A program made the translations under genes and the position numbers. Shown here one piece after another: positions 3,962 through 59,234 of a DNA stretch of 64,000 nt (position 1 is the stretch's first letter; each line of letters begins with the position of its first letter). Origin of the DNA: Haliotis rufescens (lineage: Eukaryota); the NCBI RefSeq assembly GCF_023055435.1, contig NW_025963857.1:23808001-23872000 (forward strand), written 5' to 3'. A model generated the notes under the pieces. The model worked only from the letters and a program-made list of their open reading frames with translations. It was not told the DNA's origin and searched no databases.

Positions 3962-6900
3962 TTATTGAATCTGCGCGTACAACCGCTGTGCTCTCCTTTT
4001 TTTGATGACGACAATGATGCTCGTCACGGTGACGACACAAAGTATGCCCCCAATAGAGATAATGAGAATCTCCAAAATGCTTAGACGACACGCAGTAGTT
4101 TCATCGGAGTTGTCCCCACAGTCGTCGTAATTGTTACAGATGACGTCGCTGGAAACACAGTTGTCGTTGCTGCAGTGGTACTCATGGTGACCGCAAGAAC
4201 CTGAAGTGTAACATCGAGTAACATTGTGTAACATAGCGTAACATTTGACGGTCAATACAATATAAAAGTAGATCGTATATGTGTGGTTATCAAATCCTTC
4301 GTATAAGGGGGCACGGGTGGCCCAGTCGTCTAAGGCGCCGCGATTCGCTGTGCAGAGTTGCGTCCCTTGGGCACGCCAGAAACCTATGATTGTGGGTTCG
4401 AATCCCTGTTCACCCCGATTATGTTTCTAGGTTTGTCAGCACCATACCCGTGCTCGTGGGTTTCACCGAAGTGGTAAACGCCTAAGACCTGCATCACTCC
4501 GGGCTTTCCTCCCACATTAAGCTGACACGCCGCGATATGACTGGAATACTGTTAAAAGCGGCGTTAAACCCAACTCACTCACTCACTCACTCACTCACTC
4601 ACTCACTCATAAACATAGATGTTCAGGGGGCACATATGGCCCAGTCTTCCCAGCTGTGCAGAGTTGCGTCCCTTTGGTACATCAGAAACCTATGATTGTG
4701 GGTTCGAATCCCGGTTCGCCCCGATCATGTGTCTAGGTTTTTCAGCACCATACCCGTGCTCGAAGGTTTCACCAAAGTCGTAAACGTCAGAGATCAGACC
4801 TGCATCACTTGGGGCTTTCCTCCCATATCAAGCTGACAGGTGATATAATTGGAATACTGTTCAAAGCGATGTTAAACCCAACTCACTCACTCGCTCATAT
4901 ATATTTTTTTGATTGCACCCACTGAAATGTAAATTCTAAACATCACCGCCTGAAGAAGAATAAGTCGCAATTATCTGCAGAATCCATGGGCGTGAAAGCG
5001 AAAACAGTGTTAACGTTATATAAATAGATAACTGAAATCAGATATCACACCAGCCGTTCGTAAACACAATGCTAATCTATGAAGCATGTGAAAAGTTCGG
5101 TTGTATGAAAAAGCAACTACCTTACGTATGATAAAACACGTGCGAAAACTTGTTTTCAATTTAATAGGGCATGGGCATGTTGAACTTTTGGTAGCATATC
5201 TAAAGGTTCTAAATTATTGTGTACGAGTAATTTAAGAAGCAATTGTGGTCTGACATTTTTTCGTCTAAATGAATAAAACAGCGACAGTGAATTAATTTGT
5301 AGTATTATTCTAATTGTTCAGAGATAATTTGACTGGAAAATAATAATAAGTAGAAGATTGATCTTATGCCATCCGCAGTGAGTGAGTATAGTTTAACGCC
5401 GCTTTTTGCAATATTCCAGCAATATCAAGGCGGGGGACACCAGAAATGGGTGAGTGAGTGAGTATGGTTTTACGCCGCTTTTAGCAATATTCCAGCAATG
5501 TTACGGCGGGGGACACCAGAAATGGCCTTCACACATTGTACCCATGTGGGGAATTGAACCGGGGTGTTCGGTGTGATGAGCGAATACTTTAACCACTAGG
5601 CTACCCCACTGCCCTTTGCTATCCATAGCATATCATAACAATATGCATAATTGAATACCTAAAGAAAATTAAGTACTTTAATTTAAATATCTCAAACTAA
5701 AAATAACTAGAGATTTATTCTGGCATCAGGACTTCTGAATAACCAGGTTTCATTGAATTACAGTATGAATAGTCCAATACCTAACGAAGGGGGGGGGGGA
5801 GGAAGCAGTTGTCAGTGAGTGAGTGAACGATTATGGTTTTCGCCGCCTTGAACAATATTCTAGCAATAGCACGACCGGGGACACCAGAAATGGGCTTCAA
5901 ACATTGTCCCTTTATGGTGAATTGAACCCGGGCATTCGGCGTGACGAGCGTACGCTTCAACCACTAAGCTACCCCATCTACCAGTTATGAATGAAGGCAG
6001 CATGTTTTTACCATCCTTAGCGAGTCTGAATGAAGATATGAGAAACTTGAACCCCCCGGGCTCCGTCACACCCTCGTCCTTGTGGTACTCCCACCAGGAG
6101 TAGACCCCGGAGGTGTTCAGCGTGGGTCGGGACAGGTGCTCGCCACATATCCACGGAGGTTCTGGAATGGAGTATTACTGAAAGAATGATATCTAACGCC
6201 GTTGACAGCTAAGTCCAAGCTATATCATGACGGTTTATAAATAATCTAGTTTGGACCAGGCTGGTTGACGGCATGAGCATCGATCGACTNNNNNNNNNNN
6301 NNNNNNNNNNNNNNNNNNNNNNNNNNNNNNNNNNNNNNNNNNNNNNNNNNNNNNNNNNNNNNNNNNNNNNNNNNNNNNNNNNNNNNNNNNNNNNNNNNNN
6401 NNNNNNNNNNNNNNNNNNNNNNNNNNNNNNNNNNNNNNNNNNNNNNNNNNNNNNNNNNNNNNNNNNNNNNNNNNNNNNNNNNNNNNNNAGTATAGTTTTA
6501 CGCCGCTTTTAGCAATATTCCAGCAATATCACAGCGGGGACACCAGAAATGGGCTTCACACATTGTACCCATGTCGGGAATCGAACCCGGGTCTTCGGCG
6601 TGACGAGCGAACGCTTTAACCACTAGGCTACCCGACCGCCCGACAAGAGCAACTGGTCAAGCGTTGTGGCCACCCGTTCCTCAGAGTTGTCTGAGGACTG
6701 TGAATTTGTATATTCTGTCCTATAATCCCAACGGGGAGTTCATTGAATATGTTTGACATGTGAAGATGGCTACAAAATAAAATATTGGAAACGATCTGTC
6801 TTAGGAAGTCGTCTGTCATTTCCGAAATCTGGCGCTTAGATGTCCGGAAGTTGACGTCATCAGTTTCTGTGGTACACGTCATAAAACTGCTCACGCTCTA

Positions 6901-9900
6901 TTTACATAATTTTAATTCTATTCTATAACTTCTGAGAATACAAAAAAGTTGCTATGAACTCCAGTACTATATCTGCCACGTTCTTCATGTTCAATGTTAA
7001 TGGTTATTTACAGTTCTTTAAAAAATAGTGATATATACATGTATGCTTAATCCAAGTCAATCCATGAATTATATACATGATTAGTTGTGCAATGGCGGAC
7101 ATGGTTTCGCGAGCTAGGGGCCAACCATTTGTTATTTGGTAAAATAAATGAACTAATCATTTTGTCAAAGTACATTGTTTATAGATATACACGTTTTAAT
7201 ACATCGCCTTAATTCAACCAAAATTACAACTCGACCAAATACGCTGCATCCTTATATATGCTAACACGAAGTTATTTATTATTTTTTTGTCAAATTGTCA
7301 TTCATTGTTTAGTTGATAACTGTTTAGTTACTATGTAGCTTGTATGCATAACAACATCTGTTATTAGTTATAGATGTATTGACATTGTAATATGCAACGG
7401 GAATTTCTTTTTTTAAATAAAATATAAATAATGGTGAAGATAGATTTCACCACTTACAATCAAGTCTACACTATAATGGAGAAGATATATATGTGCACTT
7501 ACCATGAAGTCTACACTATAATGGAGAAGATATATATGTGCACTTACCATAAAGTCTACACTATAATGGAGAAGAAATATATGTGCACTTACCATAAAGT
7601 CTACACTATAATGGAAAAGATATATATGTGCACTTACCATGAAGTCTACACTATAATGGAGAAGATATATATGTGCACTTACCATGAAGTCTACACTATA
7701 ATGGAGAAGATATATATGTGCACTTACCATAAAGTCTACACTATAATGGAGAAGATATATATGTGCACTTACCATAAAGTCTACACTATGATGGAAAAGA
7801 TATATATGTGCACTTACCATAAAGTCTACATTATAATGGAGAAGAAATAAAAGTGCACTTACCATGAAGTCTACACTATAATGGAGAAGATATATGTCTG
7901 CACTTACCATAAAGTCTACATTATAATGGAGAAGATATTTATGTGCACTTGCCATAAAGTCTACACTATAATGGAGAAGATATATATGTGCACTTACCAT
8001 AAAGTCTACACTATAATGGAGAAGAAATATATGTGCACTTACCATAAAGTCTACAATATAATGGAAAAGATATATATGTGCACTTACCATAAAGTCTACA
8101 CTATAATGGAGAAGAAATATATGTGCACTTACCATAAAGTCTACACTATAATGGAGAAGATATATGTGTGCACCTACCATAAAGTCTACACTATGATGGA
8201 AAAGATATATATGTGCACTTACCATAAAGTCTACACTATAATGGAGAAGAAATATGTGTGCACTTACCATAAAGTCTACACTATAATGGAGAAGATATAT
8301 ATGTGCACTTACCATAAAGTCTACATTATAATGGAGAAGAAATAAAAGTGCACTTACCATAAAGTCTACACTATAATGGAAAAGATATATATGTGCACTT
8401 ACCATAAAGTCTACACTATAATGGAGAAGAAATATGTGTGCACTTACCATAAAGTCTACACTACAATGGAGAAGATATATGTGTGCACCTACCATAAAGT
8501 CTACACTATAATGGAGAAGATATATGTGTGCACCTACCATAAAGTCTACACTATAATGGAAAAGATATATATGTGCACTTACCATAAAGTCTACACTATA
8601 ATGGAGAAGATATATGTGTGCACTTACCATAAAGTCTACACTATAATGGAGAAGATATATATGTGCACTTACCACGAAGTCTACACTATAATGGAGAAGA
8701 AATATATGTGCACTTACCATGAAGTCTACACTATAATGGAGAAGAAATATATGTGCACTTACCATCAAATCTATAATACTATAATGGAGAAGATATATAT
8801 GTGCACTTACCATCAAATCTACACTATAATGGAGAAGAAATATTTCACCACTTACCATAAAGTCTACACTATAATGGAGAAGAAATATATGTGCACTTAC
8901 CATAAAGTCTACACTATAATGGAGAAGATGTTTTTCTGCACTTACCGTTGAGCGGTTTCGCGTCTGAGTTGAGTATGATCAGTGAGGTCTCGTTACAGAG
9001 GTCACTTGTCGTTATATTGATGCTGAGCGGAGTTATGAGGAGTCGCTGTGTCAACTCCTTCGTCATAACGACAACTCTACAAAACATCTCTGTCGAATCC
9101 GTCTCTGTACCGTTGTCTGTGAATTCTAGCAGCATGTCTTTCGTGAAGTCTATAGTGGTGCCACATTCCTGGTCGAAATAATCTGGAAGAAATAATATTT
9201 AAAGCAATAACAAACGTATTAATGAATTCTATCGTGATTAATATGAGCAATAAGGAGAAGCAGTACTAGATTATTCTGTTCAACGTTATTTGTAGTTTAA
9301 CACGTTTAGCGTTAAGGTTCCAACAACGTCCCACGTCATCGGAGTACAATGGCACGCTGTTAACCAAATCATCCATTCTATATCTATTTCTAAAGCTTGA
9401 TTTCGGTCAAGCATTTGTGAGTGAGTGAATGAGTGAGTGAGTTTAAAGCCGCGTTTAACAGTATTCCAGCTGTGTATTCCGGCGTATCAACTTAATGTGT
9501 GAGGAAAGCCCGAAGTAATGCAGGTCTCAGACGTTTACCACTTTGCTGCAATAAGTCCTCTTCACTGTCAACTATACGTTAACTGTCAACAAGTTGTCAG
9601 CGCATTAAAGCCAATCATATAAGCCAAGCATAGATCAGAGCATAGAGCTCTTCTATGTCCAAAGGTGGGAAAATGTTCACTTCTTTCAAACATCCACCAA
9701 CTAGAGGCAGATGAATGGATAATTCTGATGTAATAATCATCTACTTGACAGTAGATCTCAGATCCCTTGTAGTTCCAATATTAACAAATGTTTCCCAAAC
9801 ATATTATGTAAAACTTCCTATTGCATCACCTCAAGAGGAATTGAAAGCTACAATCATGAAGATATACAAACATGTGGTACCTTCACTCACTTTACCGTTA

Positions 9901-10870
9901 TCTTTGATGTTACACATGTTAATGTCGTCACTATATGTTATAAAACGATCTCTCAGACCGTAACACGTAAAATCTGCTGAAAACGAACGATATCATGGAA
10001 TAGCAATAATAGTTTGGCCATAAAGTTGGTTACAACGCCGCTTTGAGTTGTTTGTTTGTTTGTTTGTTTGTTTGTTTGTTGTTAAACATCGCACTTTTCA
10101 TTAATCCAGCTTTATGACGGCGGTCAGTAAATAATCGAGTCTGGGCCAGACAATCCAGTGATTAACAACACAAGCATCTTTCCATGCAATTGTGGCACGA
10201 TGGCATGCATCAACCAAGTCAGCGAACCTGACCACCCGATCCCGTTAGTCGCCTCTTACGCCAAGCATGAGTTGCTGAAGACGTGTTCTTCCCGGGTACT
10301 ATAGGTAGAGACATTGCACAAAATCGTGGTATTGACGTAACATGATTGGCGAGAATCAGCCAAGAGGTCAGCGAGGCTGATCACCCAATCCCGTTAGTCG
10401 CCTCTTACGACAAGCATAGTCGCCTTTTACGGCAAGCATGGGCTGCTGAAGATCTCTTCCGACCCAGATCATCTTTGAACAGTATTCCAGTTACATCACG
10501 ACGTGTCAGCATATTGTGCAACTGAGCCCGAAGTGATGCAGGTTTCAGACTTGTATGACTTTGGTGAAACTCCCAAGTTTGGGTATGGTGCTTACAAGTC
10601 TAATAACATACGCAGGAACAATTTGGGATTCGAACCCCCGATCACCGGTCTCTGGCACAAGAAAGGTCCGTAACTCTGTACAGTTAATTGCGACGCCTTA
10701 GACGACTAGACCACACCTGAAATCACTTGAAACTGACAGCGCATTACAATCCGATATTGTCCTGTCTTAATAAACCAAATGTCATACTCACAGGTCGTTG
10801 GTGTGTAAGTACATCTTCCTAAATTATATAATGCAATGTAACTAAATAGCATGAAGATCCTAGCAGCCAT
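3962..10870 (-). CDS. Cluster gene 1: signal peptide + CUB-like + LDLa + TM + YAQI tail, 234 aa; exons 10870-10792, 9182-8946, 6161-6012, 4200-3962
   Basis: GT/AG boundaries read manually, all phase 1, 705 nt in frame. Exon 1 MAARIFMLFSYIALYNLGRC; exon 2 YFDQECGTTIDF..FCRVVV..QRLLITPLSINI..LCNETSLII; exon 3 PWICGEHL..FKFLISSF; exon 4 CGHHEYHCSNDNCVSSDVICNNYDDCGDNSDE followed by a hydrophobic helix and KKRR. Confidence 0.85.
6290..6488. other. Assembly gap (N run) in gene 1 intron 2
   Basis: Run of n bases. Confidence 1.
7430..8945 (-). repeat. 45-bp minisatellite (~33 units) starting at the gene 1 exon 2 splice donor
   Basis: Minus-strand unit ATGGTAAGTGCACATATATATCTTCTCCATTATAGTGTAGACTTT. 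Confidence 0.95.
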
Positions 10871-15454: not shown

Positions 15455-18400
15455 ATGGAGCTTTATGTTAGTATTATTTTGCTGGTAATGATAGGCACAC
15501 GTGGGGTCAGTCTGGCTCAGAAAAACACACCAACGACATGTAAGTACTTTTTTGCCTTAAATTAGTGGTGTATTTATGTGTTACACTTAAACCGAAGGAT
15601 TGCTATACTTGCGTAATACAATACGTTAGCCCAGTGGTCTAAATAACATGTCACGTAAGTACTCTATGACATTATATCGGTTTTAGTGAGTATGGTTTTA
15701 CGCCACTTTTAGCCATATTCCAGCCATATTGTGGCGGGGGACACCAGAAATCGGCTTCACACATTGTACCAAAGAGGGGAATCGAACCCGGGTCTTCGGC
15801 GTGAAAGTGAACGCTTTAACCACTAGGCTACCTGTAATCTATGAATACCCTAACCGAAACATGTGCATTCTCGTCTTTTCCGCGACTCTATCTTTTAATG
15901 TTTGCCTTTTTCTAAATACATGTGTTACTCATTCACATATAGTAATCAGGAGTAATGTGTCACGCTGCACTCTGCAATATCCCAGCTATATCAAGACGGC
16001 CTGTGCGGACGATTGGATAACAAATTTGACTCCTAAAGTATCACATTTACGATGCTGCATATATCGGCTAATAATCTTTTTGTATCTGTAAGGGTGCGCT
16101 ATATTGTGACTGTTATATTCCTTATCAGGACGTTTATGCTTCACACTTTATCCTACATTCTATATATGTATGTTTAATGTTGATATGTTATGCTTTATCA
16201 CTTATGTTTTATCCTTTGTCATGTTTGCTTTATCCTTTGCGCAACATCCTTTGTCTTTTATGATTATGCTGTATGCCTTCGAAGACAAACGGGGGCACAG
16301 GTGGAGTTCCGTCCCTTGAGCACGCCAGAAACCTATGCTTGTGGGCTCGAACACCGGTTCGGCTCTATACTGTTTCTAGGTTTGTCAGCACCATACCCGT
16401 GCTCGTGGGTTTCAATAAGTGGTAATCCTCTGAGACCGGCATCACTCCGGGCTTTCCTCCCACATTAAGCTGACACGCCTTGATATAACTAGAATACTGT
16501 TCAAAGCGGCGTTAAACCAAACACACTCACTCACTCAAAGACAATATTATACCGTTCTTATCTTCTTACATCGCTTACTTAGAAGGAGACGTTTCAATGG
16601 TGAATGTCTGTATCCTTTATCCTTTCAGTTGAGCTTTCTGAAGAATGTGGCAATACGATCATTATTTCGGAAGATATGCTTCTCAAATTATCCGTGAACA
16701 ACACCAGGAAGAAACAAGAGAGTTGTAAGACGTTGGTTGAAAGTGACGTTGACGGCAATCGTTTGTTAGTTCGCCTCCTCAGTATTGACATCCCCGACTA
16801 TCCAGATTGCTCGAAAGCCGGCCTCAATGTGTCTCAGATAGAGGGCAAACATGCTTCAGGTGAGACTGGGATGGCCACAGAATCATACCTAGTACACATG
16901 TGTTTCTTTTCGTTCGGCTCCGCGGGGATTCCACAAGATATTTTATGAGATAGCCATTGTATTCGGTAAGGCATCCATATCTTTTATGTGTTTCTCATCT
17001 CCAACCTCACCAGCAAGAGAGCGGGCGGGGGAAGTAAGAAAAAAACAATAAAATTTAAAAATACTTTTTTTACTAATTGTGTGACTTTTTTGAGGACATT
17101 TAAAAGTATAAACCACTTGGTACCAGTCAGTGACAAAACACTCTCCACAAGACTATATGACAAGAGGGATGACTTCAACTTTCCAATCGTCAACCTTCCC
17201 TTCATGTCGAGCAATATTCTTGCAACTCCCGTCTTTGATGTCTATATTTAACAACTTTTGAGGTACAGTCGAGCATGCTCTTTCTACCAAGATTTCAAAG
17301 AGTGCCGTACAACTCAAAATAATATTCAAAATTTTCAATTCTCAAAAGCAGTTCGATAAAGATTACAGTAACGCTTCAAAATGTTTTATGGTAGACATGT
17401 GGAGGACATTTCCAAATGTGACGCATCAGTGACAAAAATCATGTCTGATACAATTCCCTATGTTGACTTGAACCATATGTTCCCGTGTTTTTTCAGTTGA
17501 ACAATTGACTTGCCTTTGCATGTGTTTGTGACGGGTGCCACCGGTGGGGCAGGATACGCTCACCTTTTCGTGAACACCTGGAAACATCACTTAGTCTATT
17601 TGATATTTATTCATAAACACATGCTCATGATATCGTACCATCGACTTGTCATAATATGCAAATATATGGAAAGAGCTTTGTCGCTTTTATGTAAATCAAT
17701 TTACGACGAAGATCGAGTCGCTTGCTTCGGAAGCGAATGTTTAATAGATATAGCTGAAGAAATTTCAAGCTGACCTAGTTTTGTATGAGCGTGCAGTGGT
17801 AGTAGTAATTTTTTGTCACCTCGGAGCATAAGTTGGGACAATTGAGATACGAAAATTGTGTATTGTGTTACGCCGGAATGGAAATTCAGGGCGGGTGGGA
17901 GATGGGAAACTCAGAAAATGTACGGAGAGCCTTGTATCGCTTCGAAGAGGATTGAGGGTTGGAACTGTTCCAGTAACATATGCTGGTCTTACGAGACCAA
18001 ACAATGGCGGATCCAGCATTTCTAAAAGGGCAGGATCCAAAATATCAAAATCCTCACTCAGTCAATTATACTGCCAACACATACTACATTTGGTTTTCAA
18101 AAAGAGAGGGGGTGTCAGGACCCCCTGGATCCCCCCTCTGGATCCCCCCTCTGCATCCACCCTCTGGATCCACCCCCTGGATCCCCCCTCAGGATCCCCC
18201 CTCTGGATCCACCTCTGGATCCACCCCCTGGATCCACCCTCTGGATCCACCCCCTGGATCCCCCCTCTGGATCCACCCCCTGGATCCACCCTCTGGATCC
18301 ACCCTCTAGATCCACCCTCTGGATCCACCCCCTGGATCCACCCTCTGGATCCACCTCTGGATCCACCCTCTGGATCCACCTCTGGATCCACCCTCTGGAT

Positions 18401-21400
18401 CCACCCTCTGGATCCACCCTCTAGATCCACCCTCTGGATCCACCTCTGGATCCACCCTCTGGATCCACCCCTGGATCCACCCTCTGGATCCACCCTCTGG
18501 ATCCACCTCTGGATCCACCCTCTGGATCCACCTCTGGATCCACCCTCTGGATCCACCTCTGGATCCACCCCCTGGATCCACCCTCTGGATCCACCCTCTA
18601 GATCCACCCTCTGGATCCACCCCCTGGATCCACCCTCTGGATCCACCTCTGGATCCACCCCCTGGATCCACCCTCTGGATCCCCCCTCTGGATCCACCTA
18701 TGCCAAATGAGTCATGGTCGGTGACTTGGTTGATTGCGTGTCATCGTACCCGACGGCGCAGATTGTCTGGTTCAGAACACGTTATATAGCAGAACTAAAC
18801 ATTAGCAGGGAATTAAAAACAAACAAACAATTTATGTATTGTATAATTCAAGTATATTATCATCGATTATAGTATGCACGTGTAATCCATGCTGTTCACC
18901 ATGTCGTTCAGGCATCATTTCATCCGCAAGAAATCAGACATCAGATACGAGACCTGTGGGTTTCACGAAAGTCCCAAATGTCTAAAACCTGCATCACTAA
19001 GCGTATATCTGACGCACCGTGTTTAAGCTCTGTTCAAAGCTGCGTTACACCCAAAGAAACTAAGGCGCTCAGTTGACTTCATGATATGTTCATATTCATT
19101 TAAATGTATCTTAAGAAAGCGATATTATGTCCCCAAAATGAACTGCACTGTCGCTTAGTCAGCACTCAAAGAATACTGTACATGGTTTTATTTTTTTAAA
19201 CAAAATAACTTAATACCCAGCTGCCTATGGGTATCTAAGACATCTCATCTTTGAAAATCAATCAGTTTCCTTTTTTGGGGCACAAATTTACAATATTTCA
19301 AGACGATAGGGGCCATGTGGTTGCAAATTCATACCTAACTCCAATCTTCACTTAACTGATGTATTTTTACACAAAATTGCCCAGCCACAGATTACCTTTT
19401 GCAAACTTGCAGGAATGAGTGATGATTAATTAGATATAATAAAATTTAACAACAGTTCTTCAATTTTCAATTATAAAAAAAACAAACTGGGTATACTTTC
19501 TTTTGACCCTCATCCTAACTCACTGGAGCGCTACATATATGTAGACATTTCACATTATCCACCATAATTAATATATAATTGTAGCGTTTATGACATTAAG
19601 CCAATATTTCTTTTTTAATTTCTTCAAGAACGTCTATGTGGTACCAACATAACCACTCCAGTCTTCAACTCCAGCGGTCAGTCAGTGGGAGTTTGGTACT
19701 ATTCCAACCGTGGCGAGCATGAGGCTTCTCGGGACGTCTTCACTCTTCTTATCACGTCCTTTCACGAACAGATAAATGGTATGTGCTACTGAACGCTCGA
19801 GCACTTACACTAGTGAAGATCCGGGGTAGAATAGGTCTTCAGCAACCTACACTTGCTGTAAAAGACGATTATTCTTGTTGTAAGAGGTGACTAACGGGAT
19901 CGGGTGGTCAGGCTAGCTGACTTAGTTGATGCATTTCATCGTATTCCAATTGCTAGGGACCCTTGATAATCCGTAGTAAAATAGGTCTTCAGCAACCCAT
20001 TCTTGCTGTAAAAGACGATTATGCTTGTCGTAAGAGGCGACTAACGGGATCGGGTGGTCAGGCTCGCTGACTTGGTTGATGCATTTCATCGTATTCCAAT
20101 TGCTAGGGACCCTTGATGATCCGGGGTAGAATAGGTCTTCAGCAACCCATTCTTGCTGTAAAAGACGATTATGCTTGTCGTAAGAGGCGACTAACGGGAT
20201 CGGGTGGTCAGGCTCGCTGACTTGGTTGATGCATTTCATCGTATTCCAATTGCTAGGGACCCTTGATGATCCGGGGTAGAATAGGTCTTCAGCAACCCAT
20301 TCTTGCTGTAAAAGACGATTATGCTTGTCGTAAGAGGCGACTAACGGGATCGGGTGGTCAGGCTCGCTGACTTGGTTGATGCATTTCATCGTATTCCAAT
20401 TGCTAGGGACCCTTGATGATCGGGGGTAGAATAGGTCTTCAGCAACCCATTCTTGCTGTAAAAGACGACTATGCTTGTCGTAAGAGGCGACTAACGGGAT
20501 CGGGTGGTCAGGCTCGCTGACTTGATTGATGCATTTCATCGTATTCCAATTGCTAGGGACCCTTGATGATCCGGGGTAGAATTAGGTCTTTAGCAACCCA
20601 TTCTTGCTGTAAAAGACGACTATGCCTGTCGTATGAGGCGACTAACGGGATCGGGTGGTCAGGCTCGCTGACTTGGTTGATGCATTTCATCGTATTCCAA
20701 TTGCTAGGGACCCTTGATGATCCGGGGTAGAATAGGTCTTCAGCAACCCATTCTTGCTGTAAAAGACGATTATGCTTGTCGTAAGAGGCGACTAACGGGA
20801 TCGGGTGGTCAGGCTCGCTGACTTGGTTGATGCATTTCATCGTATTCCAATTGCTAGGGACCCTTGATGATCCGGGGTAGAATAGGTCTTCAGCAACCCA
20901 TTCTTGCTGTAAAAGACGATTATGCTTGTTGTAAGAGGCGACTAACGGGATCGGGTGGTCAGGCTCGCTGACTTGATTGATGCATGTCTTCGTATTCCAA
21001 TTGCTAGGGACCCTTGATGATCGGGGGTAGAATAGGTCTTCAGCAACCCATTCTTGCTGTAAAGGGCGACTATGCTTGTCGTAAGAAGCGACTAACGGGA
21101 TCGAGTGGCCAGGCTCGCTGACTTGGTTGATGCATGTCATCGTATCCCAAATGCATGGATCGATGCGCTTGATGCCAGTCACTGGATTGTCTGGTCCAGA
21201 TAAGATTATTTACATACCACCGTCATATAGCTGGAATATTGCAGAGTGCGGCGTTAAACAAAAACAAACAAACAAACAAAACCAATTGCGTGGATCGATG
21301 CGCATGATGTCAATCACTGGATTGTCTGGTCCAGACTCGATTCTTTACAGACCACCGTTATGTATCTTGAAAGCTTCCCTTAATACCGACTATGCTTGTC

Positions 21401-33476: not shown

Positions 33477-33512
<36 letters not shown>

Positions 33513-33910
33513 ACCCCATCGCGCACCCAACCCACACACCCGAGTAATATTCTTGGAATATTGCTAAAGCGGCATAACGAAGCACTCACTCTGCGACTTT
33601 ATCTATTGGTATATATATGCATGCACATTTCATAAAGTGTCTTGATGGGTTTTTTCCAGGAACATGTGCTTCGATTGAGTACCAGTGCGCCAACAAACTG
33701 TGCATACCCAAAGACTTATTGTGCAATGGATACAACGAGTGTTCTGATAACTCAGATGAGAATGACTGCAGCGGCCCCAATGGCACCCCTCCGGGAGAAA
33801 ACGTGGGACTTATAGTTGGTTTGACATTCGCTTGTTTGTTGGTGGTCGCAGTGGCAGCATTGTGTCTGATTAGGCGACTAAGGCGTCAGCAGGGATATGA
33901 CAGTGTTTAG
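28752..33910 (+). CDS. Cluster gene 3: signal peptide + CUB-like + LDLa + TM + YDSV tail, 230 aa; exons 28752-28836, 30744-30959, 31831-31971, 33660-33910
   Basis: Canonical splice sites, all phase 1, 693 nt in frame. MASCCVVSLLCAIFLS..; ANCNNN..QQCNLII..NRLLIDIT..DNCTDTKLDI; GPLCEE..SVIITSF; CASIEYQCANKLCIPKDLLCNGYNECSDNSDE; TM VGLIVGLTFACLLVVAVAALCLI. Confidence 0.87.
30045..30587. mobile_element. Non-autonomous DNA transposon (MITE) with ~70-bp TIRs and a 9-bp TSD, Mutator-like
   Basis: TIR CATCTTCC(C/G)GAGGCAAGAGAGTTAACTGAC...; flanks TCCTGGTAG / TCCTGGAAG. Confidence 0.85.
32875..33160 (+). mobile_element. SINE family A (tRNA-Leu-like head, ~270 bp, (CACT)n tail), representative copy. 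Others at ~1530-1787(-), 4307-4608, 4626-4895, 10476-10718(-), 14326-14602(-), 16291-16536, 23118-23316, 24489-24730(-), 27948-28224(-), 31500-31772, 32088-32367, 40534-40812, 46059-46343, 46480-46760(-), 55902-56176(-), 62075-62348(-)
   Basis: A-box TGGCCCAGTCGTCTAAGGCG and B-box GGGTTCGAATCCC; TSD CTATAGCAACTCA here and CTGTGACCGACCGA at ~14313/14602. Confidence 0.9.
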
Positions 33911-40976: not shown

Positions 40977-43907
40977 ATGGCGTCATGTTGTAGGACTCTC
41001 CTCTTGTTCATTGCACTTGTCTCTACCGGATCCGTGTGGGGTCAATCAACACCAGATCAATGTAAGTATGGTGCTGTCTACTCCCGTCTAGTTGTCTACA
41101 GTTTCTGTTTCATATAGACCAAAACACCGTCTTAGATATTTCCACCCACCTACTTCATCTTACGTCATAATGTATATCACACTGCGCGAAGACCTTGATA
41201 CATGGGTTTTTTAGACACTGATAAATACCTTTCTCATCATATACATGTATATATGATTTGAAACTACTTAATCATCAGGTCTCCAATATTGTCAAACCTC
41301 TATCTAAACCTACAAGGAACGTTATGCAATAATTTACGGACCAATCGATGTATGAAACTTATTTCGTGCTAGGGGAACTCATTTGCATATGTATCAGATC
41401 GTGACTCTAAGTTTATCGGATAAGTATATTGCACAAACACTCAGCAGTATGTGATGAATCATTCGATGAAATATAAAGCGTATTTGTCAAACACGAATAG
41501 ATATTCTCTTCACGTGTTTTCAGTTGTGCTGGAAGAGAACTGTGACAGCACCTTGCCCTTTTCCGAGAGCGTGATATTGTTTGCCTCAAACCTGTATTCA
41601 GTGGAGCAATGTAACCTCTCTATTCAGAGCAGCTTGGAAAACGAAAGGCTCCTCATCGACATCACCGTGTTAGACCTCGTGGACAGCTGCAGCAACACGA
41701 GTCTGGACATCCTAGATGAAAATGGAAACAGCATTGCAGGTATGGAGAGTTTTAATTTCAAATGAAATCGACAAACCTCATTACATATTACTCAGATGTT
41801 GATAGTACGATTCTGACTTTATCATGATCATGTGTTTCTGAATAACTATCAAATAGCGACGATACCAGGTGTTCGCGAAAAGGTGGACGTATCATGTCCC
41901 ACCGGTGCCACCCGTCACAAACACATGCAAAGGCAGGTCAATTGGCCAGAATTTCTCATTTCTGTACTTGTCGAAAATAAGTGATGATTGTGATTATACA
42001 TGGTCAGAGTGTTTGGTGCAGAAGCGTCCCTCAGTCGCGCCCCTTGCTAGTGTGTTGCTCTTCAAATTGTTCACAATAATAACTCAAACGAAATTTCTGC
42101 TTTATAAAACATTCGATGAATAATAATGGCATGTTGCTTCATAATACAGGTCCTCTATGTGAGGAGGATAACGCCCAAGTCTTCAAAGCACCGGGCAACA
42201 CTGCTCAATTTGATTACAAAAGTGACTCTCCGAAAACTAAGGGGAAATCATTGTCGATCCTCATTACTTCGTTCAACATGGGGGTTCAAGGTGTGTATCA
42301 AAGTTGTCATATTTTCATTATTTGTTTTACGATCTGCTAACCGATGTGACTCAGGTTTTAATGTGTCTATGTTGCACTTTAATTAAAATATTGTTTATTA
42401 GTATTGTAAAAAGTATAAATCCTTCATCCACGATAGACCGAAGTGGTAAACGTCTGAGACCTGCATCACTTCGGGCTTTCCTCCCACATTAAGCTGACAC
42501 GGCGTGATATAACTGGAATACTGTTGAAAGCGGCCTTAAACCCAACTCACTCACTCACTCATCCACCTTTAGAGCACTTCATTCAATCATTCAACAAATC
42601 ACCAAGCTAAGACGGGACCCAATCGCACACAACGATCTTAACGTTACGACTATCTTAAGTCAATGTTAACGTATTGGGGTAACGATCGTCGTAGAGTTTG
42701 CTTTGTGGACCCAGGTCCCCAGCACTGTATTGCGTTTCGCAGGAGATATTCCATTTACTAATGCTGTTTTGATCCATGTAAGATGTCCATTTTGATGAAA
42801 GTACTAGATACTGCCAGAGACCACATATCAGTATGGAGGCCACACATAACGTTCCCTTCTGTGCATCAAATAATAATTAATACCAGGCACATGTCAACAA
42901 GAACGAAACAGCATCATAACACAGCAACAATATATTAAGTAAACGTTCCAAATGTATATATTTTTACACTTCCGGTCCCTTCGGACAAAACACCAGGCAC
43001 TAAAAAATCACATTCTGTTGCTTTATCGTTATTAGTTCCGAGAAAGAAACATTCTTCCTCTACAATTATTCTTCACCAAGACTGAATAGGCCATACTGTG
43101 CATATTATGAGAAAGAAACATTCTTCCTCTACAATTATTCTTCACCAAGACTGAATAGGCCATACTGTGCATATTATGAGAAAGAAACATTCTTCCTCTG
43201 CAATTATTCTTCACCAAGACTGAATAGGCCATACTGTGCATATTCTGAGAAAGAAACATTCTTCCTCTACAATTATTCTTCACCAAGACTGAATAGGCCA
43301 TACTGTGCATATTCTGAGAAAGAAACATTCTTCCGCTACAATTATTCTTCACCAAGACTGAATAGGCCATACTGTGCATATTCTGAGAAAGAAACATTCT
43401 TCCTCTACAATTATTCTTCACCAAGACTGAATAGGCCATACTGTGCATATTATGAGAAAGAAACATTTTTCCTCTACAATTATTCTTCACCAAGAATAGG
43501 CTATACTGTGCATTGACACATGCTTATTTCGGGGACCGAATTGTAAACAATTTAAACAGTAAGTAAACCAGTAATATTATCGAAGTCAAAAACCTGTTTA
43601 TCTATTGGTATACACGCACATTTCATAAAGTGTCTTGGTTGTTTTTGTTTCAGGGAAATGTGCTTCGATTGAGTACCAGTGCGCCAACAAACTGTGCATA
43701 CCCAAAGACTTATTGTGCAACGGATACAACGAGTGTTCTGATAACTCAGATGAGAATGACTGCAACGGCCCCGATTACATTCCTCTGGGAGAAAACGCGG
43801 GACTTATAGTTGGTGTGACATTCGCTTGTTTGTTGGCGGTTGCAGTGGCAGCATTGTGTCTGACTAGGCTACTTAGGCATCATCGGGGATATGACAGTAT
43901 TAATTGA
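40977..43907 (+). CDS. Cluster gene 4 (mosaic): signal peptide + CUB-like + LDLa + TM + YDSIN tail, 231 aa; exons 40977-41061, 41524-41739, 42150-42290, 43654-43907
   Basis: Canonical splice sites, all phase 1, 696 nt in frame. Exons 1-3 are closely similar to gene 5; exon 4 is nearly identical to gene 3 exon 4. Confidence 0.88.
43040..43515. repeat. 69-bp minisatellite (~7 units) in gene 4 intron 3
   Basis: Unit GAGAAAGAAACATTCTTCCTCTACAATTATTCTTCACCAAGACTGAATAGGCCATACTGTGCATATTAT. Confidence 0.95.
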
Positions 43908-48371: not shown

Positions 48372-48402
<31 letters not shown>

Positions 48403-49125: not shown

Positions 49126-51970
49126 ATGGCGTCGTGTTGTGAAACTGTCCTCCTGTTCATTGCACTTGTTTCTATCGGATCCGTGTGTACAAAGACACCA
49201 GAGCAATGTAAGTGTGGTGCTGTCTGTTCCCGTCTTGTTGTCTATAGTTTCTGTTTCATATAGACCAAAACACAGTCTGGGATATATCTAACAACCTACA
49301 TCATCTTACGTGTATATCACACTGCGCGAAGACTTTGATATATGTATTTTTTTAAACACTGAAAAATACCTTTCTCATTATATACATGTATACTTAATCA
49401 TCCGGTCTCCAATATTGTCAAACCTCTATCTAAACCTACAAGGAACGTTATGCAATAATTTACGGACCAATCGATGTATGGAACGTATTAAAAGTATTTC
49501 GTGCTGGAGGAACTCATTTGCATATTTATCAGATCGTGACTCTAAGTTTAGTATATTGCACTGACACTCTTAAGTATGTCATGAAACATAAAGCGTATTT
49601 GTCAACCACCAACATATATTTACTTCACGTGTTTTCAGGGGTGTTCGAAGAGAACTGTGGTGGTATCATGAGTTTTTCCGAGAGTGTGATATTGTTCGCC
49701 TCCGACCTGCATTTTGTGGAGCAATGTAACCTCGTCATTCAGAGCAGCTTGGAAAACGAAAGGCTCCTCATCGACATCACCGTGTTAGACCTCGTGGACA
49801 GCTGCGCCAACACCAGCCTGGACATCCTAGATGGAAATGGAAACAGCATTGCAGGTATGGAGAGTTTTAATTTCAAATGAAATCGACAAACCTCTTTCCA
49901 TATATCGCAGAAGTATCTGCGATTGTACGATTCTGACTTTATAATGAGTATGTGTCTATGAATAACTATGAAATAGTGACGACGCCAGGTCTCACCGGTG
50001 GAACCTGTCACAAACACATGCAAAGGCAGGCCAATTGGCCAGAATGTATTTCTGAATTCTGTACTTGTCGCAAATAAGTGATGATTGGGATTATACATGG
50101 TCAAAGTGTTTGGCTAAGTAAACCAAGGTGCAGGAACTTTCTGAGCAGAGTCGCGTCCCTTATTTATGCAAGGACCCAGGGATCATGGTTTGAGTCCTAA
50201 ATTCGCCCTTAATACGATCCTAGATTTGTTACCAGTTACACAGTTTCTTTGCTCGTGGGTTCACCTTTAGCTCTGAATTCATTACAATACCGTTAAATAT
50301 ACTGGTATCCTGAAAACTCATTATGTTGCTCTTCAAATTGTTCACATTAATACTTAAACGAAATTTGTACTTTGTAAAACATTTGATGAATAATAATGAC
50401 ATGTTGCTTCATGATACAGGTCCTCTATGTAAGGAGGATAAGGCCCAAGTCTTCAAAGCACCGGGCAACATTGCTCAATTTGATTACAAAAGTAACTCTC
50501 CAAACACTGAGGGGAAATCATTGTCAATCATCATGACTGCGTTCAACATGGGGATTGAAGGTGTGTATTAAAGTCCTATTTTCATCACTTATGTTACGAT
50601 CTGCTAACCGTGGTGGCCCAAGTTAGAATGTGTCTCTTTAGCACTTTAATTAAAATAGTGTGTATTGTTATTCTAAAAAGTATAATAACTGCATCCACGG
50701 TAGGCGTATTTCATTCATCTTTAATCAACATTACATTCATTCAACAAATCACCTCGCTGAGACGGAGCCCACTTGCACACAACGATCTTAGCATTACGAC
50801 TATCGTACGTCTGGGTTAAAGTACCGCCTGAGTGGTCTAGTGGTAGAGCGTCCGCCCGGAGAGCGGAAGGTTCATGGTTCGATCCCCGGCCGCGTCATAC
50901 CAAAAGACGTTAAAAGATGGTACTTTTTGTTACCCTGTCTGGCGCTCGGCATTAAGGGGCTAAAACAAGGACAGGTCGGCTCGGAGTCAGTATACTGTGT
51001 CTGAGTGGGGTATTCATGTTAAACTGCGGCATGGTATCACAGTGGGCTAGCACTATAAATCGGCATCAGTCCGGACTAGTACAAGCAGCCACACACACAC
51101 ACACACACACACGTGCATGCACTTCGCTATATATGTGCAATAATCTTGGACGCGACGTTCAACCCAATTTCGCCTCACCTTCACCTCTGGGTTAAAGCAT
51201 GGGAGTTACGGTCGTCGTAGCGTTTGCTTTGGGCACGTGCACCCAGGTCCCCAGCACTGTGTTCGAGTTTCGAAGAGGTGACTCTGGGAAGTCCGGCTCG
51301 GCGATTTGTTGATCGCGACGTATCCCGACGGCGTCATCAATCACTGGTTTGTCTGGTCCAAACTCGATTATTTACGGATCCCCTTGATGTAGCTGTTGCA
51401 GCGTGCAATGACATACACTCGCTTGTAAACCTTTGGCCCCTGTTTCATCCCACATGTGCTTTATATTTTTAAGGCTCTCATTCCTGTATGACAGAGAAGT
51501 GTCGCTTATGTCTTCCAGGGTCGTGTTCCGAGCTTGACTTCCAGTGTGACAACAAACTTTGCATCCCGAAGGATTTGGTCTGCAATAACTACAACGAGTG
51601 TTCTGATAATTCCGATGAAACAGCTGTTTGTAATTCAACTCTAACCTCGACAACTCCGCTCTCGACATCTTCTACTTCCTCGACACCTACTTCTTCCTCG
51701 ACGCCTACTTCTTCCTCGACAGCAACTTCTGCCTCGACACCTACTTCTTCGTCAACTCTGTCATCGCCAAAACCGACATCGGCATCTGCTTCTTCTTCGA
51801 CAGCAGCTTCTTCCTCGGCAGCAACTTCTGCCTCGACATCGACTCCTTCGTCTACCCTGTCCCCGCCGAGACCGACATCGGCATCTCCGCCTGCGACTTC
51901 CCCACTAACACAGATATGTATTGTGGGCCTAACTACGGCATCGATTGTTGTCAAGATGAATTTTTACTGA
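49126..51970 (+). CDS. Cluster gene 5: signal peptide + CUB-like + LDLa + Ser/Thr/Pro mucin-like stalk + C-terminal hydrophobic segment, 296 aa; exons 49126-49207, 49639-49854, 50420-50560, 51519-51970
   Basis: Canonical splice sites, all phase 1, 891 nt in frame. LDLa CSELDFQCDNKLCIPKDLVCNNYNECSDNSDE, then ~85 aa S/T/P/A-rich sequence, ending ICIVGLTTASIVVKMNFY*. Confidence 0.87.
50822..51185 (+). mobile_element. SINE family D (tRNA-derived head, ~350 bp, (CACCT)n tail), representative copy. Others at ~2810-3110(-), 38750-39094, 47618-47965(-), 55310-55427(-), 56853-57202(-), 61442-61776
   Basis: A-box TGGTCTAGTGG, B-box GGTTCGATCCC, central GTCATACCAAAAGACGTTAAAAGATGGTAC; TSD TCTGGGTTAAAG at 50810-50821 and 51186-51197. 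Confidence 0.9.
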
Positions 51971-54399: not shown

Positions 54400-57300
54400 A
54401 TGGCTTCCTATACTGTTGTGTTTCTCTCTCTGTGTATGTCAACATGGACCAGCGGCGGTGCCAAGACACCAGAGACATGTAAGTATACACAGACGTCCTG
54501 GTGACCCCTAACCTTCCACCTTCCACCTCTAATATCCATTCTGACCTGATCAAACAGGCAACCTCGGGTCGTCGGCAGTTTAATGATGATACGAGGCTGT
54601 CTGTTCGTCAGGTAAAAATGTCTACCAAGGTCATGGGCTTATTTGAGGAATACTACTATTCCACACAGACCACGAATCCCACGAATTGATAAATTTTAGG
54701 ATTCGTAGTCGAATTTACAATCAGTGAAATTCTTAACTGATTCGCATATATTCGTAGTTAGTTCTTACAATCCTTGAGCTATCGGGAATTCGTGGCAAAA
54801 GTTTTGAGCTGTTCAAAGTTTTGGCCACGAACTCCCGATTCAAAAATATCGTAGTTAATTCGTAACAAATTCGTAATGCATTCTTAGGCATCGTAACTGA
54901 ATCGGTATCGATTCGTAGGCATTCGTAGGTATTCATAAGTCATTCGGGGATTCGTGAATTCGTGGCTTTACGACGAATCGGCTACGAATCTGTCATGAAT
55001 CCCACGAATACACGCCGAAGCTATCTTGATGGAAAAATCCACCCCAAAATTGTCAAGAATAGTCACGAATTCATTTATTTTTCGTACCTGATTCGTACAA
55101 TTCGGCGTATTCTTAACTGATTCGTAACTGATTCCTAACTTTCGTGCAGTATTCCTAATAGCTTCTTGTAAATCGTAGTGAATTCTTGACAATATTCAAG
55201 CGAATCCAGCCGAATCCCACGAATATTCGTAATTATAATATCGTACCTGTATCGTAACTAGATCGTAGAGCGTCACGAATTGAACCAGAATATTTGCTAA
55301 ATTCAATATGACAGGGTGACAACAAGTACCATCTTTTAACGTCTTTCAGTATGACGCGGCCGGGGATCGAACCCCGGACCTTCCGCTCTCCGGGCGGACG
55401 CTCTACCACTAGACCACGGAGGCGGTCTGATGTTTTGGAAAGTGGGTAGGGTGGGCGTCCATTATATTGGATCTCATCGTTATCGTTTTCGCTTGACCAA
55501 ACAGCCTCACGTTCATTGGGCGCGATAGGTAGGCTAGTGGTTAAACGTTCGCTCGTCACGCCTATGGCCAGGGTTTGATTTCCAACAAGTGTGAAGCCCA
55601 TGTCTGGTGTCCCTGTCGTGATATTGCTGCAGTAGAGCTTAGAGCGGCTTAAAACCATACTCACTCATTATATTGTCCAAGTACCTACGGATGCCTATGC
55701 TGCCGGATTAGAGCGGATTGTTATTGTCCTAGTATCTACATATTCCTATGCTTCCTTGGTAGAATAGATCCCACAGACTAAGCTGGTCGCAAGAGGCGAC
55801 TACATATATCAGATGGGTAGGCTCGGTGACGTGGTGAATAGCGTCATGTAGCTGGAACATTCCTGAGTGTGGCGCTAAACAACCAAAGATCTATTTTTTT
55901 TAGTGAGTGAGCTTGGTTTAACCTCGCTTTTTTACAGTATTCCAATTATATCACGGCGTGTCAGCTATATATGGGAGGAAAGCCTGAAGTGATGCAGGTC
56001 TCAGGCGTTTACCACTTTGTTGAAACACACGAGCACGGGTATGGTGCTGACAATACTTGAAACATAATGGGGGCGAACCGGGATTCGAACCCACAATCAA
56101 AGGTTCTACCATGCCCAAGGGACGCAACTCTGCACAGCGAATGGCGGCGCCTTAGACGACTGGTCCACCCGTGCCCCATTTTAATTAGTAAAGTGTGAGT
56201 GAGTATTGTTTTACGCCGCTTTTACATGCACTGTTTTAAAAATAGGCGTACAGCTGGGATGACACTTCACCTCCATCTGAAACGATAAGGCACGGCACAC
56301 AGCCCACCGTTCCATAAGCATTGTTTTTGTAAAAATCACCATCTCTCCGCGAAGCATAAAACCATGCCCTGACCTCAAGTTCCTTTCAGTTACCATGGAG
56401 AGCAACTGTGACCAAACACTTTCCTTCTCCGATAGCATGATTCTGAGGGGGAATCTGTCGTCGTCGTGCAATATGGACGTGGAGACTGATGAAGACGCGC
56501 TAGGCATCCTCATTGACATCACATCCTTCAGCCTCCCCTTGGAATGCAACACCACGCTGGAGATCGTAGATCCGCTCGGGCCTCGAATATCCGGTAAATT
56601 GTTATCATTCTGCAATTGTGTGTCCTTGGGTGAATGAGTAGGTAAGTGAGTATGGTTTTACGCCGCTTTTTAGCAATATTCCAGCATTATCACGGCGGGA
56701 GACACCAGAAATGGGCTTCACACATTGACCCATGAGGGGATTCGAACCCGGATCTATGGCGTGACGAGCGAACGCTTTAACCACTAGACCCCACCGCCCC
56801 GACGACACATTGTGAAACCCCAATCTTGAGAACGTTAGTCAATAGAACAAAGAGGTGAGGTGAAATGGGGTTTAACGTCGCGTCCAAGATTATTGCACTT
56901 ATATAGCGACGTGCATGTACGGGTGAGTGTTTGTGTGGCTGTTTGTACTAGTCCGGACTAATGCCGTTATATATTGCTAGCTCACTGAGATACCATGCCG
57001 CAGTTTAACATGAATACCCCACTCAGACACAGTATACTGACTCCCAGCCGACCAGTCCTTGTTTTAGCCCCATAATGCCGAGCGCCAGACAGGGTAACAA
57101 CAAGTACCATCTTTAAACGTCTTTTAGTATGACGCGGCCGGGGATCGAACCCCGGACCTTCCGCTCTCCGGGCGGACGCTCTACCACTAGACCACGGAGG
57201 CGAACAATAGAACAAAGAAGGCATTGCATTGATGTATTGAGCTTGAAAGTAGTACCTGCTTGGCGACCTCATTTGAATAGTCATCGGATCGTGTTTCAAG

Positions 57301-59234
57301 TTTATCGGATTGGTTTGTCGCATCCATGACTTTAACCATTTATGATAAATACAAGTTGGTCAATACATAGATCTGAAGTACAAAAATGTAGACCAGCCAA
57401 AATGTCAGTATTCATTAAGTTTGTTATGTGATAGTCACGTGAACGAAACTAATATGGATTCCTTCCAGTGCTGGCCGACAGATGGTGTTTCAGACTTACG
57501 TGTTTGGCAAAGTTAGTTTCATTATAACCTTTGTATTATCCATTCCATTTAAAACGGTTGTGAAGAAGTATGGAAAACCGTGTCCGGGGTCCCGTTCCTC
57601 AAAGCGATCTTAGCGCTACGACTGCCGTACGTCTATGTTAAAGCATGGGAGTTACGATCAACTTAGCACTATGATCGCTTTGTGGAACGGGGCCCAGAGG
57701 AGAAGTGTTAACTTGGCGTCCACAAGGATATTATAAGTATTCTGACCTTATTGCACATTACGTTATCATTGGTGACGTCATAACATTGACAAACCCATAC
57801 TCCACTTGATCAAACAGTATAAACATTACGTCAGTTGTGACGTCATATATATTGTGACGTCATTATGTCAACTTAAGTGCAACATGGCGTCTACAAATCA
57901 TTATTATACTATTCTATATATGTTCTACTTTCCACCCAACAGGAACATTGTGCGGCTCCAGATTGGCCACCAAGGTGTTCAACACCTCTGTGCCAGCCAT
58001 AGCTCTGCAGTATGACACGGACACAATAGACTCCGATGCTACCTTCACTATCATACTGACATCGCTCAAACGAGGGCCTATTGGTAAGTTCCCTGTTTAC
58101 TTCTGTGGTACAATGGTAATGACAGTGCACACCTCTACAGCGCGTTATCCACAAAATGGATGTTCAAATGTATCACAGCTTAAGGGAACAGGGTCCATTC
58201 ATTTTGCAGTCTCAGTTCCCCGGGGAGTATACAATCCATGCTGTCTATTTTGCACTGGAAGGTACTGCATTTACGTTTACATCTCATACTACCGGGCACC
58301 CATTGACTGCTGGGTGAATTGAGGCCAATGTATAAGTTGCCTCGACTCAGGAGACGCCACTACGTGTTTAACCTGTGTTTCGGTCATCCTTCGCCATCTG
58401 CTTGTCGGTGTTGGGAGTTATAGAGACTTCTACATTGGCTACTATTAATAAAATATGTTTTAAGATAGATGCATCTGGGTTCTTATACATGTATCTCTGA
58501 TGCGATGGGCTATAATTTTGTTCGAAAATATTCAAGCCGGTATCGGTTTTGATTGGCAAAATGGCGTCCCAAATGAAACCGTCATTCTCATCTTCAAACT
58601 CAAACACGACTTGCTTGTTAATGTGTTCAACAACATCGTTAACAACAACAACAACAACAACAACAACAACCTGATTACGGTACAATCCTTTTTATTCTGG
58701 AAACACATTTGTCCAGGAACTCTCTTCGCTATGGCGTGTCTCGGTTGAGATATTTACAAAATTCATCATGCTGTATTCACGTGTGCATAAAATACTAAGG
58801 AAGGACAAATTAAAGTTAAATCGAAAAATCAAATGTTCCTTTGATCCAAACTCATTTTTCTATTTGTTTTGCTTTGTAAAAACACAAAGTTGTATTTTAT
58901 ATTTAAAAAAAAGTATCAGGAAATAATAGTGAACTAATATAAGTTTTAGCATACTTAACCACTTTTTAGCGTTAAAAGACCACATGGCCAATGGTTTCCA
59001 TTTCCCCAAATTTGTTTTCTTCGTTTTTTAGGAAGCTGCTTCAACGACGCCTTCCAGTGCAGCAACAACTTCTGCATAGCCAAGACGTTAGCCTGCAATG
59101 GTGTGGACGAATGCGCTGATAATTCAGACGAAACTCGCGTCTGCGACAGTTCAGCCCGCCTCTCGTCTGTGCCAGTGTTGACAACGGTTGTAGCATTATT
59201 TGCCGTCATATCGGGTTCAGCCGGACAAAGATGA
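54400..59234 (+). CDS. Cluster gene 6: signal peptide + CUB-like + LDLa + probable GPI-anchor signal, 208 aa; exons 54400-54478, 56390-56593, 57943-58083, 59032-59234
   Basis: Canonical splice sites, all phase 1, 627 nt in frame. MASYTVVFLSLCMSTW..; SNCDQTLSF..SCNMDV..ILIDITSF..ECNTTLEIVD; TLCGS..FTIILTSL; CFNDAFQCSNNFCIAKTLACNGVDECADNSDE; ends DSSARLSSVPVLTTVVALFAVISGSAGQR*. Confidence 0.85.
54665..55300. repeat. Foldback-like repeat rich in ATTCGT/ACGAAT in both orientations (probable non-autonomous DNA element), gene 6 intron 1
   Basis: Dense ATTCGTA and CACGAAT motifs on both strands. Confidence 0.45.
57586..57695. mobile_element. Short hairpin MITE; decayed copies at equivalent positions in gene 4 (~42614-42712) and gene 5 (~50763-51245, split by a SINE D) intron 3
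   Basis: GGGTCCCGTTCCTCAAAGCGATC ... GATCGCTTTGTGGAACGGGGCCC. Confidence 0.65.

Follow-up and report, generated by a model that had tools for sequence, protein, structure and literature searches.

A 14-member tandem array of genes for small CUB-LDLa surface proteins in Haliotis rufescens, probably endocytic or trafficking co-receptors

What do the cysteine-rich coding pieces scattered over a 64,000-nucleotide (nt) stretch of the genome of the abalone Haliotis rufescens encode, and are they working genes? The stretch, hereafter called the window, covers positions 23,808,001 to 23,872,000 of contig NW_025963857.1 (NCBI RefSeq assembly GCF_023055435.1), and positions below are counted from its first letter unless scaffold coordinates are given. 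A reading of the letters alone, hereafter the original prediction, had proposed a hidden tandem cluster of six receptor genes, each with a signal peptide, a CUB domain split over two exons, and a single LDLa module followed by an anchor. Our analyses indicate, with a probability that we put at about 80%, that the six genes are real, expressed and code for small type I surface glycoproteins, which would act as endocytic or trafficking co-receptors and belong to an old array of proteins with the CUB-LDLa-transmembrane (TM) architecture.

In order to delineate the genes, we located the last exons, which encode the LDLa module and a hydrophobic anchor, by a motif scan of the six-frame translation. 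Six LDLa-like Cys modules were found, one on the minus strand near 4100-4240 and five on the plus strand near 21650, 33665, 43660, 51525 and 59060. Each lies in a stop-free stretch that runs through a hydrophobic segment to a stop codon, with the outermost stops at 3962 (minus strand) and 59234 (plus strand). All-against-all comparison of the stop-free pieces revealed a second conserved piece upstream of each module, and a pattern search yielded a third. The DNA at the ends of these pieces displays canonical acceptors with pyrimidine tracts and GT donors, and boundaries taken from it give 237, 231, 216, 216, 216 and 204 nt for exon 2 of genes 1 to 6, respectively, and 150, 150, 141, 141, 141 and 141 nt for exon 3. 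A short exon 1 with an ATG, a hydrophobic core and a phase-1 donor is present 0.4-1.9 kb 5' of each exon 2, and its end carries a similar '..TP..' stretch in all six genes. A script check of the six genes showed that all 18 introns are GT..AG introns in phase 1, that no stop occurs in an exon or a split codon and that all total lengths are divisible by three, with products of 234, 241, 230, 231, 296 and 208 residues. Three Cys residues of exon 2 and one of exon 3 are shared by all copies, and the RLLI/ILI and ITSF-type strands can be aligned. The six four-exon genes thus came out exactly as originally predicted in their limits (3962-59234), exon 2 and 3 lengths and intron phases, and the CUB-type cysteines and strands said to be kept are indeed those that the copies share.

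Gene 1 lies on the minus strand. Its exon 1 (10792..10870) provides the start codon and signal peptide and is 90% identical to the N-terminus of its orthologue P0127 (see below); exons 2 (8946..9182) and 3 (6012..6161) encode the N- and C-terminal halves of the CUB domain, and exon 4 (3962..4200) the LDLa module, the TM segment and a tail with the motif YAQI before the stop. The other five genes are on the plus strand, with the same assignment of exons. Gene 2 comprises exons 15455..15539, 16629..16859, 19629..19778 and 21643..21902, the last with a YLPI tail, and gene 3 comprises exons 28752..28836, 30744..30959, 31831..31971 and 33660..33910, with a YDSV tail. The exons of gene 4 are at 40977..41061 (with another in-frame ATG at 40959), 41524..41739, 42150..42290 and 43654..43907, the last encoding a YDSI tail. 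Gene 5 consists of exons 49126..49207, 49639..49854, 50420..50560 and 51519..51970; its LDLa module is followed by a Ser/Thr/Pro-rich stalk and a short hydrophobic C-terminus. An alternative ATG is found upstream, at 49105, and translation may start there, as in the H. cracherodii orthologue P0010. Lastly, gene 6 has exons at 54400..54478, 56390..56593, 57943..58083 and 59032..59234, and its LDLa module precedes a hydrophobic C-terminus without a tail, either a glycosylphosphatidylinositol (GPI) signal or a tail-less TM segment.

Intron 2 of gene 1 contains an assembly gap of 199 N (6290..6488), located 128 nt 5' of the exon 3 acceptor at 6161. The gene 1 orthologues P0127, P0008 and P0126 run from exon 2 into exon 3 contiguously, with zero residues missing, and therefore no coding sequence is expected in the gap. 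The start of the same intron is filled by a 45-nt minisatellite of 33.7 copies (7428-8946), which begins at the exon 2 donor. Each unit contains a donor-like GGTAAGTGCA, and one frame is open for approximately 500 codons through the array. Other long tandem arrays occupy introns and spacers of the cluster (19814-21154, 26236-27646, 43040-43513, 18120-18698 and 11024-11517, with periods of 150/451, 49, 69, 13/38 and 59/118 nt, respectively).

The original prediction called for transcript support of the 18 junctions, and we looked for it in contig sets. Fourteen small sets contained 12-20% of the sequence words of the window. None of them is registered as RNA, their run labels are coded and the tissues hidden; we took the contigs as RNA because of their exon-only coverage and GT..AG joints. 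Four sets were mapped, on window positions 40500-46499. In gene 4, contig depth follows exons 2 to 4 and the 3' end, where contigs extend to ~44112 (3' untranslated region), and exon 1 in run X4 only, with almost none in the introns. The GT..AG joint 41739|42150 between exons 2 and 3 of gene 4 is present in runs X2, X4 and X5, which come from three studies. Contig 19 of run X4 is identical to exon 3 of gene 4. A 597-nt contig joins exons 2 and 3 to a last exon that begins like that of gene 5, and its differences from gene 4, those in exon 3 included, are exactly the gene 4-to-gene 5 differences. Genes 4 and 5 are therefore both transcribed, with the splicing of our models; the transcript support pertains to these two. 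Dispersed repeats are abundant in the window and have very deep contig coverage, for example at 40500-40899, 42300-42699 and 44100-44699.

Have these genes been annotated before? To answer this, we performed a profile search of 1.84 billion protein representatives, followed by exact look-ups; each window exon was used separately as a query, with public full-length proteins (P0027, P0127 and others, in the labels of our collection) standing for the joined products. Gene 6 proved to be identical, exon by exon, to the H. rufescens RefSeq protein XP_046333620.2 (P0027, LOC124116358, 208 residues), exon 1 matching residues 1-26 of the latter at 100%. Annotated orthologues of genes 1, 2, 4, 5 and 6 exist in H. 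cracherodii, H. rubra or H. asinina, some of them under the name 'LRP12-like': P0127 (H. cracherodii), P0008 (H. rubra) and P0126 (H. asinina) for gene 1, the 'LRP12-like' P0021 (H. rubra) for gene 2, and the H. cracherodii proteins P0001, P0010 and P0117 for genes 4, 5 and 6, respectively. With the exon 2 region of gene 5 as the query, a single protein was matched, P0001, which is an N-terminally short gene 4 orthologue in which the joins of exons 2/3 and 3/4 are visible. Altogether, the junctions of genes 1, 2, 4 and 5 are corroborated by orthologous protein models. In the collection searched, genes 1 and 3-5 had no H. rufescens protein, gene 2 not having been searched in that manner. The cluster is therefore hidden in part only: genes 1 and 3-5 lack an H. 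rufescens protein in that collection, but gene 6 is annotated in this species and genes 1, 2, 4, 5 and 6 in other Haliotis species. A literature search with the gene identifiers and with Haliotis 'LRP12-like' returned nothing.

The window does not contain the whole family. A profile of the six exon 2 translations run against the entire assembly detected four more copies on the same scaffold, upstream of the window, and local profile searches of the 108 kb upstream of it yielded seven more genes, which share the three coding pieces of the window genes as well as the positions and phases of their introns. A 12-sequence profile then retrieved 14 exon 2 copies, all located between 23,712,224 and 23,864,592 of the scaffold, and only weak, generic CUB matches (E > 0.003) elsewhere in the assembly. 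The array thus spans approximately 155 kb of a single scaffold and has 14 members, with splice sites and intron phases kept in 13 copies. The prediction of a tandem cluster of paralogues was sound, but six was an underestimate: a seventh gene (u7) straddles the left edge of the window, with its exon 1 inside (996..1085, minus strand), as located by tblastn with residues 1-30 of P0005 and P0122, and its remaining exons upstream (scaffold C79:23800001-23808000). Genes u7 and 1 point away from genes 2-6 and thus form one inverted two-gene block in the array. At least three upstream copies (u4, u6 and u7) have a fifth coding exon for a longer tail. The 14th copy, LOC124116359 (P0033, 158 residues, C79:23791216-23794768), encodes a signal peptide and a CUB domain only; it is kept in H. 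cracherodii as P0123 and perhaps represents a secreted CUB protein that arose from the receptor array. The search that the original prediction proposed across molluscs was also productive, as proteins with the same plan were found in other gastropods and bivalves, and in a starfish (Gigantopelta, Patella, Batillaria, Solemya, Tegillarca and Asterias).

The array has some irregular members. In exon 2 of u3 (C79:23737010-23737231), 8 nt are missing relative to u1 and u2 and the frame is shifted, making this copy either a pseudogene or an assembly error. Together with the CUB-only LOC124116359, it might suggest that the window pieces are themselves decaying copies or chance exon-like pieces rather than working genes. 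We regard this as highly improbable, given that splice sites and phases are conserved in 13 copies, that genes 4 and 5 yield spliced transcripts and that intact orthologues exist in other species; it is contradicted already for genes 1, 2, 4, 5 and 6. A pseudogene reading of the six window genes was rejected, as the script check shows that all of them are intact.

Next, we characterized the encoded domains. The LDLa module is canonical: each of the six last exons exceeds the gathering cut-off of Pfam (PF00057, 24.1 bits), with 32.3-43.8 bits over profile positions 2-37 (32.3 bits for gene 1, 34.0 for gene 2 and 43.8 for gene 3), and all contain the six cysteines and the acidic D-x-S-D-E cage. 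At the gathering cut-off of Pfam CUB (PF00431, 21.4 bits), there were zero matches to single window exons, and zero to the proteins of genes 1, 4, 5 and 6 or their orthologues. The gene 2 orthologue passes it with 23.7 bits and upstream paralogues with 23.7-29.1 bits, and 13 of 17 family proteins match the profile at E ≤ 0.01. In upstream paralogues, exon 2 corresponds to positions 1-75 of Pfam CUB (E = 0.006) and exon 3 to positions 76-108 (E = 0.044), the two halves being co-linear. Four cysteines never vary, neither among 12-13 paralogues nor among 17-21 family proteins: C6, C34 and C62 in exon 2, and C5 in exon 3.

Profile searches against the sequences of the PDB gave a concordant picture. 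Profiles built from the six window sequences alone gave no useful match there, and CUB matches appeared only once the upstream paralogues had joined the profiles. The family profile of exon 2 then matched cubilin only (E = 7e-5), and that of exon 3 matched cubilin, neuropilin-2, C1r, TSG-6 and MASP-2 (E = 4e-6 to 0.03). The exon-profile alignments to these CUB domains cover the matching half-domains, with the third and fourth cysteines aligned each time. Among the 1.84 billion proteins, cubilin-sized giants with multiple CUB domains head the list of exon 2 matches, with up to 18 matched stretches. An ESM Atlas look-up also pointed to CUB clusters, with scores of 0.83-0.86, which we treat as a lead only.

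We then used AlphaFold, with family alignments as input, to model P0027, which is identical to the gene 6 product, and the gene 1 orthologue P0127. In both, the predicted local distance difference test (pLDDT) score is near 90 or above over most of the CUB domain, and the top Foldseek list contains only CUB proteins. Z scores of 11-15 were obtained for the matches of the predicted models to spermadhesin, neuropilin, Kremen, C1r/C1s, MASP and PCPE-1. The best single-domain match is to spermadhesin (Z = 15.3, root-mean-square deviation (rmsd) of 1.7 Å, 108 of 112 residues), and a match to CUB2-LDLa of Neto2 extends over 145 residues (Z = 15.2, rmsd of 2.6 Å). As the upstream paralogues, the full-length relatives, the family profiles and the predicted structures all agree, we assign exons 2 and 3 to one CUB domain, with a jelly-roll beta-sandwich in the predicted models. 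Both the CUB fold expected for the two exons and the full order of signal peptide, CUB domain, LDLa module and anchor are hence borne out by the domain searches and the models. In genes 1-4, a signal peptide, one CUB domain, one LDLa module and one TM segment follow each other in that order and are completed by a tail of 13-16 residues; genes 5 and 6 end in a tail-less hydrophobic C-terminus.

How do these proteins relate to known systems? The family plan is that of Drosophila CULD (CG17352) and Loaf (Lost and found) and of the membrane-proximal half of NETO. CULD and Loaf are, like the abalone proteins, small type I membrane proteins with the same number and order of domains. Both are located in endocytic vesicles, and both control how other membrane proteins are trafficked (PMC4732287, PMC8205486). 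The abalone genes differ from them in forming a 14-copy tandem array, in their much shorter tails and in the absence of a cytoplasmic tail from two copies.

The original prediction had cited NETO and CULD as known cases of CUB and LDLa architectures. They are indeed the nearest known kinds, and the best whole-length structural match is to Neto2, of which CUB2, the LDLa module and the TM segment align. NETO1, NETO2, Drosophila Neto and C. elegans SOL-2 are auxiliary subunits of glutamate receptors, and the best whole-length matches of both models are the Neto2 chains of GluK2-Neto2 complexes. Might the abalone proteins, then, bind ligand-gated ion channels through their CUB and LDLa domains and tune gating or clustering? 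This appears distinctly unlikely to us. The match is one of fold and domain order at 13-23% identity; NETO proteins are products of conserved genes and have two CUB domains and a long regulatory cytoplasmic tail, whereas the abalone array consists of 14 fast-diverging tandem copies with one CUB domain each and tails of 13-16 residues or none.

Other relatives share parts of the plan. LRP3 and LRP12 also combine CUB and LDLa domains in a type I membrane protein. With about 770-860 residues, a pair of CUB domains and several LDLa modules, they contrast with the abalone proteins, which have one of each in 208-296 residues. The NCBI names 'LRP12-like' and 'LRP3-like' given to relatives reflect automatic best matches and not shown orthology. 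Vertebrate LDLRAD2 is a small CUB, LDLa and TM protein with the same minimal plan; a literature search on it returned cancer-expression papers only. Spermadhesins resemble the array in their single CUB domain, which best matches that of the abalone proteins and is paralleled by the CUB-only product of LOC124116359, but they are secreted mammalian seminal proteins devoid of LDLa module or anchor. The abalone array thus represents further members of a known, little-studied protein type and no new class of system.

For most pairs of paralogues, synonymous sites are saturated, and the ratio of non-synonymous to synonymous substitution rates (dN/dS) is uninformative there. Genes 4 and 5 are close in exons 2-3, with a synonymous divergence (dS) of 0.07-0.29, whereas for exon 4 the close pair is genes 3 and 4 (dS = 0.08). 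The similarity of gene 4 (40977-43907) is thus split between gene 5 (49126-51970) and gene 3 (28752-33910), a pattern that fits exchange among neighbours. In our tree, genes 4, 5 and 6 are grouped (support 96/92), as are the upstream copies (95/94), genes 1 and 2 are on long branches and the deep nodes are left open. Divergence within the 14-gene array is highest for the six window genes. An orthologue of gene 1 is found in each of the three other Haliotis species examined. As the saturated synonymous sites and these orthologues show, the copies are old: they predate the divergence of the Haliotis species examined, and the CUB-LDLa-TM architecture is older still than the array. Of the proposal of a lineage-expanded family evolving by birth and death, the tandem paralogues remain; the saturated sites, the Haliotis-wide orthologues and the occurrence of the same plan in other molluscs and a starfish argue against the rest.

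These data also allow one to weigh the idea that the array is a diversifying repertoire for immune, chemosensory or gamete recognition, with the CUB surface as the variable binding site. The tandem arrangement, the low identity of the CUB exons between paralogues (17-30%), the varying anchors and the signs of exchange among genes 3-5 are all in line with it, as is the fast divergence of orthologues: the CUB domain of gene 2 is ~62% identical between H. rufescens and H. rubra, and exon 2 of gene 5 is 85% identical to its H. cracherodii counterpart. Against it, dN/dS, where measurable, is 0.12-0.34 in exon 2 of genes 3-5, and values above 1 were obtained only on stretches with about 13 differences. 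Moreover, the paralogues have a long history and persist as orthologues in other Haliotis species; exon 3 of gene 1, which encodes half of the CUB domain, is its best kept exon across species (88-98% identity), and its LDLa/TM exon diverges about like exon 2. We consider this possibility unlikely, and the 'variable recognition domain' of the original prediction is not supported, as dN/dS is mostly below 1 where measurable and no positive selection is shown.

A feature of the C-termini points to another role. Approximately 10 residues behind the TM segment, genes 1-4 have a YxxΦ motif, which is kept across the family. The gene 1 tails of four species read YAQI, YTQI, YKEI and YMHI, the Tyr and the final Ile being constant and the middle two residues varying. 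Other Haliotis tails have YLPI/YLSV, YDSV/YDSI, YRRL and YQRL, and a Solemya protein has YQPL. Motifs of this type bind the µ2 subunit of the AP-2 adaptor, which leads to clathrin uptake. The conserved motif thus parallels the trafficking role of CULD and Loaf, and on account of both we read genes 1-4 as coding for endocytic or trafficking co-receptors, the most likely role suggested by sequence and analogy.

In such a mechanism, the ectodomain would bind either a protein ligand or another membrane protein as its partner, after which YxxΦ would bring the bound complex into clathrin-dependent endocytosis. Differences in CUB surface between paralogues would correspond to different partners. Genes 5, with its mucin-like stalk and short hydrophobic end, and 6, with its GPI-like end, would then represent non-internalising or lipid-anchored variants that have lost the tail. 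Of note, the relatives from outside the genus P0025, P0102, P0124, P0115 and P0116 (Gigantopelta, Asterias, Solemya and Tegillarca) carry long tails rich in Pro, Gln and Tyr with PPxY motifs, which are absent from the window genes. PPxY motifs usually recruit NEDD4-type ligases.

Several points weigh against this interpretation. Genes 5 and 6 have no YxxΦ tail, and hence the endocytic reading cannot hold for them as stated. A YxxΦ motif has a fair rate of chance occurrence in a short tail, so that the argument is its conservation and not its mere presence, and the likeness to CULD and Loaf is one of domain plan. The contig runs have coded labels, and their 'RNA' status, to which the evidence for expression is subject, is a guess by the software. 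Lastly, the Haliotis copies appear to have T, A or N in place of the Asp of the CUB calcium site (C-x-x-D-Y), as seen in one hidden Markov model alignment to cubilin only; this Asp is kept in Solemya, Tegillarca and the transcript-derived P0097. Binding by the Haliotis CUB domains may thus differ from the calcium-dependent mode of CUB domains.

One could alternatively regard the window genes as a fast-evolving, possibly Haliotis-specific offshoot of an old endocytic CUB-LDLa-TM family that now serves as a variable recognition set, for example for microbes or gametes. This offshoot would have lost the PPxY tail seen in relatives outside the genus as well as the CUB calcium site, and would display three anchor types (TM segment with YxxΦ, mucin stalk and GPI-like end), with its variety kept by exchange between neighbours. 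Taken as a whole, this scenario seems quite unlikely to us, and we favour that of endocytic or trafficking co-receptors.

Our analysis adds five gene models (genes 1-5); for genes 1 and 3-5, there is no recorded H. rufescens protein in the collection searched. Few proteins with a single CUB-LDLa-TM unit have been studied (CULD, Loaf and the NETO relatives). With intact, truncated and differently anchored copies side by side, the abalone array constitutes a natural series in which the parts of such proteins that govern partner choice could be told from those that govern trafficking.

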